Below, one piece after another: positions 8,078 through 34,724 of a stretch of 34,724 nt of DNA (position 1 is its first letter; every line of letters starts with the position of its first letter). The notes under the pieces are model-generated. The model did not search any database, was not told the origin of the DNA, and saw only the letters and a list, made by a program, of their open reading frames with translations. The position numbers were made by a program, and so were the translations under genes. The DNA is from Cercozoa sp. M6MM (Eukaryota; Protista; Endomyxa: Ascetosporea): the NCBI GenBank assembly GCA_040357565.1, contig JBDODJ010000119.1. One strand, written 5' to 3'.

Positions 8078-8207
8078 CTAGCAAAGAAGATGCAGTCCCT
8101 CTAGAACGAGCTTAACAATGAACTGGATTAGCAAAGAAATAGAAAAACAACGAGCAGTCCCTAGCAATCCCTTTAGAAAAAGCAGTCCCTTAGAACGAGC
8201 AGTCCTT
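8078..8207. repeat. Degenerate tandem repeat (~TAGAACGAGCAGTCCCT) just downstream of the ceramide synthase stop
   Basis: GCAGTCC occurs four times; TAGAACGAGC occurs twice. Confidence 0.6.
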
Positions 8208-9270: not shown

Positions 9271-9536
9271 CATATCAATGAAACCAACTCGGACAGTTCC
9301 CGTGCACCAGTCTAGGACAACTGAAACCACTGTTCATTTTTATTTTATTTTCGTTTGGACCGACGCGAGCTCTAACCGGCAGATGCACAACGCAGAGCTA
9401 AGAAAAGTTATAGGGCAATCTCGTGGATTTAGAACATTCCTCAATATTGTGGAAGGAGTATTATAAATAACTGATCAAGTAGCCGTCCGAGTCGGTACGA
9501 TCAGGTCGGGGCTCACTTCGGGTAAGGGAGGCCACC

Positions 9537-27256: not shown

Positions 27257-27457
27257 ACTGAAATGAGCTGCGTATGCCCCCGGTTGGCCCGACGTTTTTG
27301 AAACTGCCTGCCGTAATTATTTACCCTCGGGTTGTTTTTTAGTTGTGACGATCGGAATTAGCCCGTACAGAAAAAAAAGTACTGCGACTACACGTTGGCT
27401 TTTTTTCTTTTCTGCGGAAACCGAACGAAAAAGCAAAAACCAAAAACTCGTGTCGAC

Positions 27458-27462
27458 AAAAA
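27458..27462 (-). terminator. RNA polymerase III oligo-T terminator of the tRNA-like gene
   Basis: TTTTT on the minus strand immediately after ...CGACAACAC, with more T runs further downstream. Confidence 0.75.
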
Positions 27463-27463
27463 G

Positions 27464-27617
27464 TGTTGTCGCCCGGACTCGAACCGGGATCCACTCGCAC
27501 TACCCACGGGCTTAATGGCGGCTCTAGAACGAGCAGCCTCCAGTTTCGTAGAAGAAATTTGATGTTCGATGGAGCCCCGAAGGGCAGATGAGCGCTCTAC
27601 CATTGAGCTACGACAAC
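27464..27617 (-). ncRNA. tRNA-like Pol III RNA (154 nt) with an 82-nt structured expansion of the anticodon arm; isotype not assignable
   Basis: GTTGTCG/CGACAAC acceptor stem (7/7 Watson-Crick) plus A73; TA; D arm GCTC-AATGGTA-GAGC (A box); T arm CCCGG-TTCGAGT-CCGGG (B box); T5 terminator 1 nt downstream; 99 nt between D arm and variable loop instead of 17. Confidence 0.85.
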
Positions 27618-27893: not shown

Positions 27894-29789
27894 TTAAAGC
27901 TCCCAGTTGCGGCGGCACTTGCGCGTCTTGTCGCTGCCGACGGCCGGCTCGATGGCGTCCAGCACTGCCTTAACTTCTGCAACAAGGGAGGCGGGTATAT
28001 GGATAGATAGATGGATAGATAGATAGATAGATATCGCTAGATAGGCGAGCAAGAGACAGAGGATGGACAGAAAGACAGATGGATAGACAGAAAGACAGAT
28101 AGAGAGAGGAGCACCCTGCAAGACAGGCTCGTCGAGACAGAGTCGCAGCATGCCAAAGTGCGTGAGACGCGAGATGTGCCACAGCAGGCCGAGACACTTG
28201 GCCGGTGCTTGCTCGGTCGGCACGAAGCTGTCGTTGTTGTGACTCTTGTCCGGGCCGAGGCACAGGAAGCCGTCGGTGTTGTCGAAGCGGCGGCGCAGGA
28301 GCGACACGAGGCGGCCGAGCTGCGCGGCGTCGAACCAGTGACTGGAGAGCCAGGCGGCCAGGCGGCGCGACGGCACGGCCAGCACCAGGCGCAGCAGCAC
28401 GCGCGCCGACCGCGACGCGAACACGCGCATCAGATCGAAACCACTGCGCACCTCCATCGGCTCCACCGCCTTCTCCGACTCTTCTGCAAAGCTTCCGCTC
28501 TTCTCCGACTCTTCTGCAAAACTTCCGCTCTTCTCCGACTCTTCTGCAACAGTGCCGCTCGCTTGCGTCACCACTGCGGCGATCTCGTCGCTTTCAGCCA
28601 CGGTTTCGCTGGTGCGATCGACGGCGTGATCAACCGTTTCGCTGATGTGATCGGATAGATCCACGGTGCGATCGGAGGAGGCCATCGCCGAGTCGATCAC
28701 GGTGATAGGAATCGCTCGGAAATCGTCGTCGGCCTCGTCCAGCACCTGCAGCGGCACGGCGCGCCACTCTGCTCGGACAGTTCGTGTGCGTATGCATGTG
28801 TGTGTGTGTAAGTGCAAGTATATAGACATGTAATTATATATCTACGAATGTGTGTGTGCATGTGTGCGTGCGTGTGTGTGCGTATGTATGTGTGTGTATG
28901 TGTGTGTGTATGTGTGTGTATATGTATATGTATATATCTACGAATGTGTGTGTGTGTATGCGTGTGTGCAAGTATATCAATATATATATATATCTATCTA
29001 TATATATGTATATGTATATATCCATGAATGTGTGTGTGTGCATGTATATTTATGTATACAATATATATTATATACATATATATATCCATGAATGTGTGTG
29101 TGTGTGTGTGTGTGTGCATGTATATTTATGTATATAATATATATTATATACATATATATATACATATATATATGTGTGTGTGCGTGTGTGTGTGCATGTA
29201 TATTTATGTATATAATAAATATTATATACATATATATATATATATATATGTGTGTGTGCGTGTGTGTGTGTGTGTGTACCGGAATGTTCGGTGCCAAAGT
29301 GTCGCCGCAACTTCTGTCGCACGCGGCTTCCGGCGGATTTCGCTTTCGCTTTTTTCGCCTTTTTCTGTGTTGTTTGCGTTTTCGCATCGTGCGGATTCTC
29401 ACATCGTTGGATGCCCTTCTGCAGGCAAGAAAACACACACACAAATACACACGGATAGTTCAGTCGAGTGAGTTGAGGAACAGTTGCACCAGTGCGAGTT
29501 GCGACAAGGAACTAGTGTCGCCAATCACTGTTTGCGAATGCAGTATCAGAAACAACATGAAAGAAAACACAAGTGCACACCTTTGCACAATCTAATCGCT
29601 TCCTTGAATGATGCAATGGCCTGTTTATGCTGCTTGCTGAAGAATACAAACGTAGACACAACAGTCATTGTTACAGCTATGCTTGTACAGTTTCTCAAAG
29701 GCAGTGCCACGTCGAAGGTTCACTTTAGCGTCCAGTCGCGTCACTGCGTGTGTGCTTGTGTGTGTGTGTTTTTGTGTGACTTGTACGTG

Positions 29790-32953: not shown

Positions 32954-34724
32954 ATGTCTCCGCGCATGGAGACAGAGGAGGCACGGGAGTTACTTGTGGT
33001 ACGAAAATTGCTGCTTAGTGCTTGTATTTGTACCTTTCTTGTGGGCTCAATCGATACCAAATTCAAACGACTTTGTGTGAGTTTAGCTCATTTCTGGCTG
33101 GTTTCTATCAAGTGTGCTCGCTGCCTACACCGGCAAGACACTACTGCATCAGTTGACGAGTGCGGTGCAATTGTAACCCATCTTATCCTGCAGTTCAGTT
33201 GAGTTGTTCAGTTTAATTTATCGCTTCAACTTGATTCGGGCAGGAGTGTCATCCAGTCGCTGTTTTCTGCAGTCGTCGGTGTCTGTGTCATGCTTGCCTG
33301 GCAGAAACGAGTGTCTGTGCTGTCTCCCAGGGACATTGCGACAAAAATCGCTCCGCTCGCTCTCTTTCAGTCATCTTGTATTGAGATCAATCTTGTTTCT
33401 TTCTTGCTCAGTAAAATTTAGTCTTGGTTAACATGGGCAAGTGTGTGCACAGATTCGGTGAACTACAATGTCGCAATGCGTCACGTGCCAGTTTCATACT
33501 GTAGCGTTCTGTGTCAATTTTACTTTCAGTTTGGCGAGTTGATTTTGGCATTTGTCTCTGGCAGTGAACACTGTCAAGACGAGCATTCCGATCTACACGG
33601 TGCAGATGTGTCTACTAAAGAGTCCGTACGAGTGTCTGGGGTGTCTAAGGTCTGATGACTTGACGTTTGGCCGTTGTTTTGCTGCTGGGACAGTGCGTGT
33701 TGTGCCGGTTGTATTTTTCTCCTGATCGCAAGTTCTCCTTGCTGACGTGTATGTGCTTCTTTACGCTTTCGTATTTCCGTCTTGGCTTCCTGTCGCTCCT
33801 TTATATCCCTGTCACTTCTTTATCCCCCTGCTACCCGATTTCCCATGTTGACCTTTTGGTTCAGACGTGTCGCTCGCTGTCTTGTTGGGCGGAATCGTTA
33901 TGGCGTCGCTCTATGGTATAGTACTTATGAAGAGGTGTGCCTAGAGAGGACAGCAACACACACCCATTGGTTAACAGAGCCAAACTTTGCGTGGCTCGGT
34001 CTCTTTTTCGCCAGTTTCTCGGCCCTGTCGCAGTCGCTGTTTAACCTGTAACTTCATTGGTTAAACATGGCTCTATACCCCTTCCCTCTGAGCCATGTTT
34101 ACCCCTTACCTCCCTTAACCCCTCGTTACCTCCCTGTGATCATCGATGTCGAAACAGAGCAACGAAGAAACTAATGTCGCAAGCGAAACATGGCTATCAG
34201 TATCATGTTCTCGCTCGTGTGTGTGCGTGTTTCTTGGTATTTGTGTGCACGTCCGCGCTGACAGAAAGCTGACGCAGGTGTCGCTGAATGCAACGGAGGA
34301 ACTCGATCAGATTTCGCTCTTGTTTTACAATTCGTGCGTGTCGCTCGTCTTTATGGTTTCACCTCCTTGTTTACCCCCCTGTTTGCCCCCCTGTTTGCCC
34401 CCCTGTTTACCCCCCTGTTTGCCCCCCCTGTTTGCCCCCCTGTTTACCCCCCTGTTTACCCCCCTGTTTACCTCCTATATGCCTTGTATTAAACCCCCTG
34501 GTACAGGTGCCGCTGCTGGTGCTCGTGCCGTTGCCGTCGGCGGCGCCGTCGGTGTCGCTGCTGCTGCTGACGGGAGGAACTTACTACGCCGAGACTCTCT
34601 TCACCTACCTACTCTTGTAGAGAGCATTTTACCCCCTTTACCCCCCTTACCCCCTTACCCCCTTTACCCCTCCCACTTCCCAGCTTCACCGGCTCACCCT
34701 ACCCCTTTATCCCACTTTACCCCC
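32954..34724 (+). CDS. Triose-phosphate/nucleotide-sugar transporter family (SLC35E-like), 3' truncated by window
   Basis: Exon fragments SVNYNVAMRHVPVS, VNTVKTSIPIYT and VSLAVLLGGIVMASLY|EPNFAWLGLFFASFSALSQSLFNL|ATKKLM match TPT-family motifs (TIKAxEP; GGVALAS-ELNF-W-GF; N-SKKLM). Confidence 0.75.
34364..34724. repeat. Intronic C-rich arrays: (TTTACCCCCCTG)-type 12-mers at 34364-34475 and TTACCCC-type repeats at 34628-34724
   Basis: Directly visible. Confidence 0.85.

Follow-up and report, generated by a model that had tools for sequence, protein, structure and literature searches.

Results

The window, a stretch of 34,724 nucleotides from the protist Cercozoa sp. M6MM, carries on its minus strand a tRNA gene whose anticodon loop is interrupted by a long insert. 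The sequence that the initial annotation had quoted for this locus is present exactly at positions 27464-27617. The parts of the gene, and the RNA elements to which we refer below, are the following:

27464-27617, minus strand: whole tRNA gene, 154 nt, with the discriminator A at 27464; matched by Rfam RF00005 and by our own covariance model R1
27582-27617, minus strand: 5' exon (37/38 reading), with the 5' strand of the acceptor stem, the D arm with box A, CUCAU (positions 27-31) and the loop CU-GCC-C
27500-27581, minus strand: insert read as an intron, 82 nt; Rfam places the insertion in the anticodon loop
27464-27499, minus strand: 3' exon, with nucleotide 38, S2, the variable loop UGGAU, the T arm with box B, the 3' strand of the acceptor stem and A73
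27421-27462, minus strand: four T5 runs (27458-27462, 27441-27445, 27434-27438 and 27426-27430), read as RNA polymerase III terminators
27574-27585, minus strand: hairpin H1, GCC and C37 paired with GGGC over a UUCG loop; spans the exon/intron border
27539-27573, minus strand: hairpin H2, UCCA...UGGA closing an inner UUUC/GAAA stem, with a pyrimidine-rich middle; part of the minimum-energy fold
27517-27538, minus strand: hairpin H3, 8 bp with one U·C mismatch and a 6-nt loop; part of the minimum-energy and consensus folds
27503-27507, minus strand: S1, intron-borne GUGGG, the alternative perfect partner of stem strand 27-31
27494-27498, minus strand: S2, GCGAG, positions 39-43 of the presumed mature tRNA; the stem strand chosen by the Rfam model

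The Rfam tRNA model (RF00005) matches the window copy over its full length with 48.1 bits (model positions 1-71 of 71; gathering score 29; E-value 1.8e-07 for the window), and our own covariance model R1 scores it at 149.7 bits. In the RF00005 alignment, 87 nt fall into the anticodon loop, where the model expects five. The acceptor (7/7 pairs), D (4/4) and T (5/5) stems are fully paired, both elements of the internal promoter are intact (box A at 27600-27610, box B at 27475-27485), and the bases engaged in tertiary contacts are complete (U8-A14, A15-U48, G18G19, G45/G46, T loop UUCGAGU). A single C separates the 3' end of the gene from the first T5 run (27458-27462), behind which the three further T5 runs follow. 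The initial annotation had described the stems as perfect and the boxes and the terminator as intact, and it was right on each of these points. It had also proposed that the anticodon arm is replaced by a 99-nt domain, and this description has to be revised. Both strands of the anticodon stem, CUCAU (27-31) and GCGAG (39-43), are present, so that the extra RNA constitutes an 82-nt insertion within the anticodon loop and not a replacement of the arm.

The Rfam alignment positions the insertion at or next to position 37/38, the usual site of tRNA introns, and its removal joins 36 nt with 36 nt into a tRNA of 72 nt. In its default mode, ARAGORN calls no gene at the window copy; in its intron mode it reports a tRNA-Gly(gcc). 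The insert matches no other family: a permissive Rfam scan of the region returned the tRNA only, and no snoRNA, miRNA or other family of note for the insert. A tmRNA was rejected as a candidate, since ARAGORN detected none and the Rfam model tmRNA_permuted yielded 14.4 bits against a gathering score of 47.

In the 23.6-Mb eukaryotic assembly, the same six loci, and no others, were returned by a DNA search, a D-arm pattern, a T-arm pattern and a covariance model built from the family, all of which agree: the window copy, two copies on contig 35, and one copy each on contigs 55, 30 and 1 (referred to as C35, C55, C30 and C1 copies). Four of the paralogues score 45-52 bits with the Rfam tRNA model and display the same insertion in the anticodon loop. 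The triplet that follows C32-U33 is GCC in the window and C1 copies and GUC in the other four, and it is always succeeded by a C and by hairpin H1, which is capped by a YWCG loop. In an alignment of five paralogous sequences (A2), C32, U33, G34, C36 and C37 are invariant, as are the D and T arms, and the acceptor stem is paired at 100% with four of its pairs changed on both sides. In all six copies, the acceptor, D and T stems are perfect, both promoter boxes are present and T-run terminators follow the gene; in all five paralogues the T runs lie within about 15 nt of the gene end, and a poly-A tail is found in none of the six copies.

Since pairing has been maintained through changes on both sides, the tRNA body is under selection, and a tRNA shape kept by selection excludes a decaying pseudogene or a SINE. 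This is in line with the initial annotation, which had argued against both possibilities on the basis of the window copy; the intact boxes, the T-run terminators, the missing poly-A tails and the compensatory acceptor changes now extend its argument to six copies. Many decayed copies, as expected of a SINE, do not exist in this genome, as all six members have intact stems. For these reasons we also rejected a tRNA-derived SINE or a retroposed pseudogene as a candidate (six copies only, intact stems, T-run terminators, no poly-A tail). It is hardly credible, too, that the loci are non-functional relics, in the sense of tRNA pseudogenes that were duplicated and had their anticodon region broken up by an insertion. 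The poor anticodon loop that any simple splice would leave behind would fit such relics, as would the normal Gly and Asp genes that the genome has at other loci, but six dispersed copies with mostly unalignable flanks would then all have retained both promoter boxes and T-run terminators, and their acceptor, D and T stems would all have stayed perfect, with compensatory changes.

Exons and inserts differ in their degree of conservation. The exons are 69-100% identical across the family, those of the window copy being 78-85% identical to the others (81-85% to the four GUC copies). Between distinct loci, the inserts are 22-68% identical; the window insert shares 36-51% identity with those of its paralogues, which has to be seen against the 15-40% obtained in forced alignments of the flanks. 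Insert lengths over the six copies are 55, 80, 80, 82, 82 and 115 nt. Within the GUC group, the inserts are 65-68% and the flanks 24-50% identical. The flanks are mostly unalignable beyond chance; they can be aligned only for the C35 pair and for the C55 and C30 copies, and shared flanks occur only where a duplication at the DNA level is evident. These comparisons show that the insert evolves faster than the exons, as an intron does and unlike a functional domain put on display. The initial annotation had suggested a search for homologues with covariation in the insert. Six paralogues with one covarying H1 pair exist within the genome, but the middle of the insert is variable, and two metagenome pattern scans revealed no relatives: the first returned nothing and the second only an unrelated adjacent pair of short tRNA-like sequences.

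A block of about 30 nt (CAGCATTTGT.GATATGG.AG...) recurs about 15-45 nt upstream of the gene in the C55 and C30 copies, whose other flanks are unalignable; it may represent an upstream promoter element. The C1 copy (contig 1, 258950-259136, minus strand) is interlocked with a second, tRNA-like unit. Its insert consists, in this order, of a T arm, a 3' acceptor strand, a 2-nt linker, a 5' acceptor strand, a D arm and one half of an anticodon stem, and hence has the arrangement of a circularly permuted tRNA; the inner and the outer acceptor stems each pair with their own partner. Rfam scores the inner unit as YrlA-like with 45.2 bits, below the gathering score of 69, and it also matches the C1 copy as two tandem tRNAs with mismatched acceptors at 26-28 bits. 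[quoted passage not shown]

Contigs 314, 53 and 1320 carry very dense clusters in which nearly all other tRNA genes of this genome are found. The anticodon set of the clusters is of the eukaryote type and almost free of redundancy; it includes intronless Gly(GCC) and Asp(GUC) genes and an intron-bearing Tyr(GUA) gene; Gly-CCC and Arg-CCG are the only anticodons that we did not see in them. The bodies of the clustered Gly(GCC) and Asp(GUC) genes are unrelated to the six-copy family. The nearest bodies in the genome are those of the Ile(AAU), Lys(UUU), Tyr(GUA) and Phe(GAA) genes and not those of the clustered Gly, Asp and Val genes, so that the Val-like acceptor stem attributed to the window gene by the initial annotation is unsupported. 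Among the matches of a scan with box-B words, the real dispersed tRNA genes are Val(UAC), the six-copy family with its long inserts, and a Sec-like gene; the remaining dispersed matches are nearly all due to chance and have unpaired T stems. The tRNA-Tyr(GUA) gene (contig 314, about 9372-9462, plus strand), a single clustered gene, contains an intron of 18 nt. It is the sole other intron-containing tRNA gene seen in the genome and served us as an internal control for splice-site anatomy. Its precursor folds into a perfect succession of helix, 3-nt bulge, 4-bp helix, 3-nt bulge and helix (z = -2.82).

In terms of position, the clusters lie at about 8-15 kb on contig 314 and at about 66-69 kb on contig 53, with others on contigs 1320 and 1514, and few tRNA genes lie outside them; on contigs 53 and 1320, portions of the clusters recur in mirrored order. 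Near position 165101 of contig 8 (minus strand) lies a pseudogene resembling tRNA-Leu, in which most of the anticodon arm is missing and the T stem is imperfect. Near position 69981 of contig 26 (plus strand), a perfect T arm (CCCGG/CCGGG) is preceded by a UCA-containing segment, and this is probably a tRNA-Sec gene.

The insert had been described as structured, and the three hairpins that the initial annotation listed are present as written, the third with one U·C mismatch. H1 is paired at 100% in the five aligned sequences, and at one of its pairs both bases have changed, the U-A of the GUC copies corresponding to C-G in the window copy. H2 is absent from the consensus fold of the paralogues, in which only its short closing stem and its pyrimidine run recur. 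An equivalent of H3 with a different sequence is found in the C35 and C55 copies; the C30 copy lacks it, and in the C1 copy other RNA takes its place. In H1 and H3, pairing has thus been kept through sequence change across paralogues. The energetic side of the description did not hold up. Folded alone, the window insert is no better than its shuffled versions (z = -0.37), and the same applies to the paralogous inserts (z = -0.59, -1.26, +1.06 and -1.55); the inserts are not thermodynamically unusual. The whole 154-nt RNA reaches z = -2.26, a value for which the tRNA body alone would account. Inspection of the insert by eye revealed neither box C/D nor H/ACA elements.

Could the insert itself be the product on which selection acts? 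The gene would then be spliced, and the excised intron, linear or circular like the tRNA-intronic circular RNAs of animals, would be the functional RNA, with the tRNA body serving mainly as promoter and processing scaffold and a poor anticodon loop being tolerated. The survival of H1 and H3 pairing through sequence change, the higher identity of inserts (65-68%) than of flanks (24-50%) in the GUC group and a block of about 25 nt in the middle of the insert that is nearly identical between the C55 and C30 copies (by eye) are all consistent with this proposal, which would also account for C37 and the ill-fitting identity elements described below; a precedent exists in Drosophila tric31905, derived from a 113-nt intron with a conserved structure (PMC4536317). 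However, conservation of primary sequence across the family is confined to the ends of the intron, the C30 copy lacks and the C1 copy has replaced most of its middle, and no known RNA family is matched. We therefore judge this explanation to be distinctly unlikely.

Two further ideas about the insert were rejected. A cryptic anticodon arm with the triplet CUA (UUUC/UUCUACG/GAAA) has its loop and triplet conserved in no paralogue. As for a guide RNA, with the insert antisense to an intron motif, the window contains no excess of complementary words, and the only 12-mers are of the same sense and lie in the repeat at 8099-8202; recurrent donor-side words related to the insert were not found. This low-complexity repeat (8099-8202, minus strand; GGGACTGCTCGTTCTA-like units) has words of 12-13 nt in common with the loop side of H3, which we judged to be chance.

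Strand 27-31 of the anticodon stem has two potential partners. With S1, it is paired in 25 of 25 cells of alignment A2 and, by eye, fully in the C1 copy as well; the UA just after S1 is conserved in the five aligned copies, and both the RNAalifold consensus and ARAGORN select the S1 helix. With S2, pairing amounts to 80%, against 100% for S1: A30·C40 is mismatched in five of the six copies, and this pair never forms in A2. Judged by sequence, S1 and its tail look like a tandem duplicate of S2 and the variable loop. On the other hand, pair 28-42 has changed on both sides in S2 but not in S1, the sole compensatory change in the anticodon stem, and under an enforced cloverleaf all six copies favour the S2 over the S1 conformer, by 1.3-8.3 kcal/mol. 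In the S2 conformer, S1 pairs with the loop (a 6-bp helix in the window copy) or with the intron's own 5' part, and in one of the contig 35 copies (C35a) the 3' splice site then lies in a 3-nt single strand beside the stem. A class II tRNA or tRNA-Sec, which the ARAGORN model of an S1 stem with a 14-nt variable region brings to mind, was rejected, as these 14 nt form no stem and the anticodon calls of ARAGORN are inconsistent across the family (Gly, Gln, Asn, Gln and Leu).

The S1 helix is the basis for a reading in which the RNA is never spliced. S1 would close the 'anticodon' stem, the hairpins would form a long extra arm, S2 and UGGAU would be part of the variable region, and the ends of this tRNA-like RNA would be processed by RNase P, RNase Z and the CCA-adding enzyme for a role other than decoding. 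We consider this reading unlikely, despite the complete pairing of S1 in all cells and its choice by both programs. It gains from the contrast between the family, which is devoid of a bulge-helix-bulge, and the Tyr intron, which has one; from C37 and A30·C40, which would make a poor decoder; from the stem-like covariation of the anticodon-like triplet with its H1 partner; and from the separation of the family from the clustered, near-single-copy tRNA set. Set against this are the energetic preference for the S2 conformer in six of six copies and the pair that changes on both sides in S2 only, inserts that are not unusually stable and at the deeper split barely exceed forced flank alignments in identity, an H3 hairpin that is dispensable (C30 copy), a middle part that can be wholly replaced (C1 copy), and C32, U33 and G34, which are as invariant as in a real anticodon loop.

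The splice-site anatomy of the family does not conform to that of the Tyr gene. An exhaustive scan of the family for bulge-helix-bulge motifs gave many chance matches, none at a common position that would give a sensible tRNA. In the window copy, the 37/38 join creates the loop CU-GCC-C-U with a C at position 37, which in tRNAs is almost always a purine. With C37 and A30·C40, the window copy joined in this way would depart from a regular tRNA, with its purine at position 37 and its intact 5-bp stem, on both counts. A join at 36/37 would place a purine at position 37 throughout (G, A, A, G and G across the family; G37 in the window copy), with no structural motif in its support. Furthermore, the window copy has U2-A71 in its acceptor stem and U31·G39 in its anticodon stem, and the GUC copies have A73. 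As tRNA-Gly is identified by C2-G71 and Asp tRNAs by G73, the identity elements of the family fit neither Gly nor Asp. All of the oddities that the initial annotation had noted for a tRNA-Gly(GCC) spliced at 37/38 (A30·C40, U31·G39, C37 and the missing C2-G71) are correct.

A purine at position 37 would also result if the anticodon were drawn from the 3' side of the insert, where GUA and a purine directly precede nucleotide 38 in five copies and GCA is found in the C1 copy. This non-canonical register would yield a Tyr-like (in the C1 copy Cys-like) loop CU-GUA-RN, which in the C35 copies would equal the loop of the genome's own tRNA-Tyr; the Tyr gene is among those with the nearest bodies, and the middle bases of the 5' and 3' triplets agree in five of six copies. 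Still, we find such a register very improbable. The 3' cut would fall inside the S1 helix and no bulge-helix-bulge fits it, and the conservation of GUA is equally well accounted for by its pairing with U33-C37 in the 6-bp helix. Moreover, all copies have G1-C72, as opposed to the C1-G72 that is typical of eukaryotic tRNA-Tyr and present in the genome's own Tyr gene.

Discussion

The window gene is probably a nuclear RNA polymerase III tRNA gene with an unusually long intron in its anticodon loop, and one of six dispersed paralogues. This interpretation builds on the full-length Rfam tRNA match with an insertion inside the anticodon loop in the window copy and four paralogues, on the normal 72-nt tRNA that the joined exons would form, the selected body and the divergent, length-variable insert, and on the S2 (mature-type) stem that is more stable in all six copies. 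Under the best reading, the decoded triplet is most likely GCC in the window copy and GUC in four paralogues. For the window gene, we infer transcription, splicing, the splice register and any aminoacylation from its sequence.

These data lend themselves to the following model. The primary transcript would fold into a normal acceptor, D and T body, in which the anticodon triplet and C37 would be sequestered, together with the first bases of the intron, in the UUCG-capped hairpin H1. The 3' end of the intron, GUGGGUA (S1 and UA), would pair with the anticodon loop or fold back onto the 5' part of the intron, and would draw the ends of the intron together, leaving the 3' splice site in a short single strand beside the anticodon stem. 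The tRNA splicing endonuclease would then measure from the tRNA body instead of relying on a bulge-helix-bulge motif, and ligation would produce a 72-nt tRNA with the anticodon GCC (window copy) or GUC (four paralogues). Yeast and vertebrate splicing endonucleases are known to cut by distance from the tRNA body (PMC4090602).

A plain tRNA-Gly is nevertheless an uncomfortable reading of the window gene, given that there is no shared bulge-helix-bulge, that C37 and A30·C40 impair the anticodon arm, that S1 pairs perfectly and that the identity elements do not fit. Another point against an intron is that the genome has normal Gly(GCC) and Asp(GUC) genes, which are intronless. It is conceivable, although we doubt it, that the six genes do not encode decoding tRNAs and instead form a lineage-specific family of RNA polymerase III transcripts on a tRNA scaffold, which either keep a long arm closed by S1 or deliver an excised, possibly circular intron RNA with the tRNA as a by-product.

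The initial annotation had gone further and likened the gene to tmRNA, as a carrier that displays a functional RNA domain. This proposal is unsupported, because the insert lies at the site of introns, is low in identity, varies in length from 55 to 115 nt, has no special fold and matches no Rfam family, and because the canonical tRNA introns recorded for eukaryotes span 6-133 nt (PMC4090602). The likeness to tmRNA is limited to the idea of a tRNA-like module combined with extra RNA; a D arm or anticodon stem of this kind is missing from tmRNA, and a tag reading frame is part of it. We are probably dealing with a known kind of gene, i.e., one with a long tRNA intron, in a new variation: a paralogous family of long-intron genes whose splice-site anatomy is atypical. 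A new RNA class is not indicated.

Like substrates of the TSEN splicing endonuclease, the window gene has its insert in the anticodon loop just past the anticodon, with the anticodon paired to intron bases, and it combines an intact body, internal boxes A and B and a T-run terminator with an insert whose length lies in the 6-133-nt range (PMC4090602). Unlike these substrates, the family is devoid of a bulge-helix-bulge and of the pair between position 32 of the anticodon loop and the intron base three nucleotides before the 3' site; the product of the window gene would depart from TSEN-type tRNAs by C37 and A30·C40, and its intron, in contrast to usual tRNA introns, bears a second and better-matching copy of the 3' stem strand.

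In small green algae, long introns co-occur with permuted tRNA genes (PMC13578239; PMC3978253), as exemplified by O. tauri with introns of about 64 nt (PMC13578239). The genome studied here resembles those of the small green and red algae Ostreococcus, Micromonas and Cyanidioschyzon in this combination, with the permuted piece located inside the C1 copy; the algal genes, however, have been described with a bulge-helix-bulge at their junctions, and the window family has no shared one. Unusually long introns are also a feature of the Drosophila tRNA:Tyr gene CR31905, whose 113-nt intron has its structure kept by compensatory changes (PMC4536317), comparable to the H1 and H3 pairing kept across our paralogues. 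Yet CR31905, the source of tric31905, encodes a normal tRNA-Tyr with a standard splice motif, while in the window family the intron middle is poorly conserved and a circular product is hypothetical. The archaeal tRNA-Trp intron, with a median length of 65 nt, is host to a box C/D guide RNA (PMC4090602) and thereby offers a parallel, within the long-intron reading, for a long intron that houses a second functional RNA. The window insert differs from it in having no C/D boxes by eye and no snoRNA family match, and its gene is eukaryotic and nuclear.

If the family is spliced as proposed, the endonuclease of this organism handles introns of 55-115 nt without a bulge-helix-bulge. The same genome has a perfect motif in its tRNA-Tyr gene and a permuted tRNA-like piece, and it therefore bears on how recognition by ruler or by motif has evolved in eukaryotes with disrupted tRNA genes. 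The six genes also represent a natural case of an anticodon change (GUC/GCC) that is matched by a compensating change in the intron, and of an intron-borne duplicate of the 3' stem strand. The C1 copy, in which a long intron hosts another tRNA-like unit, is relevant to models for the origin of permuted tRNA genes. If the family is not spliced, it would represent a new tRNA-scaffold RNA.

The surroundings of the gene in the window include an open reading frame of 311 codons on the same strand (27894-28829, minus strand) without a Pfam match; about 277 nt separate its end from the tRNA gene downstream of it, and the frame contains a 30-nt tandem repeat (28466-28560, 3.2 copies, 92% match). Near both ends of the window lie arrays with a period of 12 nt (2180-2490 and 34356-34472), made up of GGGGTAAACAGG and its complement GTTTACCCCCCT, with 7-10 copies each and 90-100% match.
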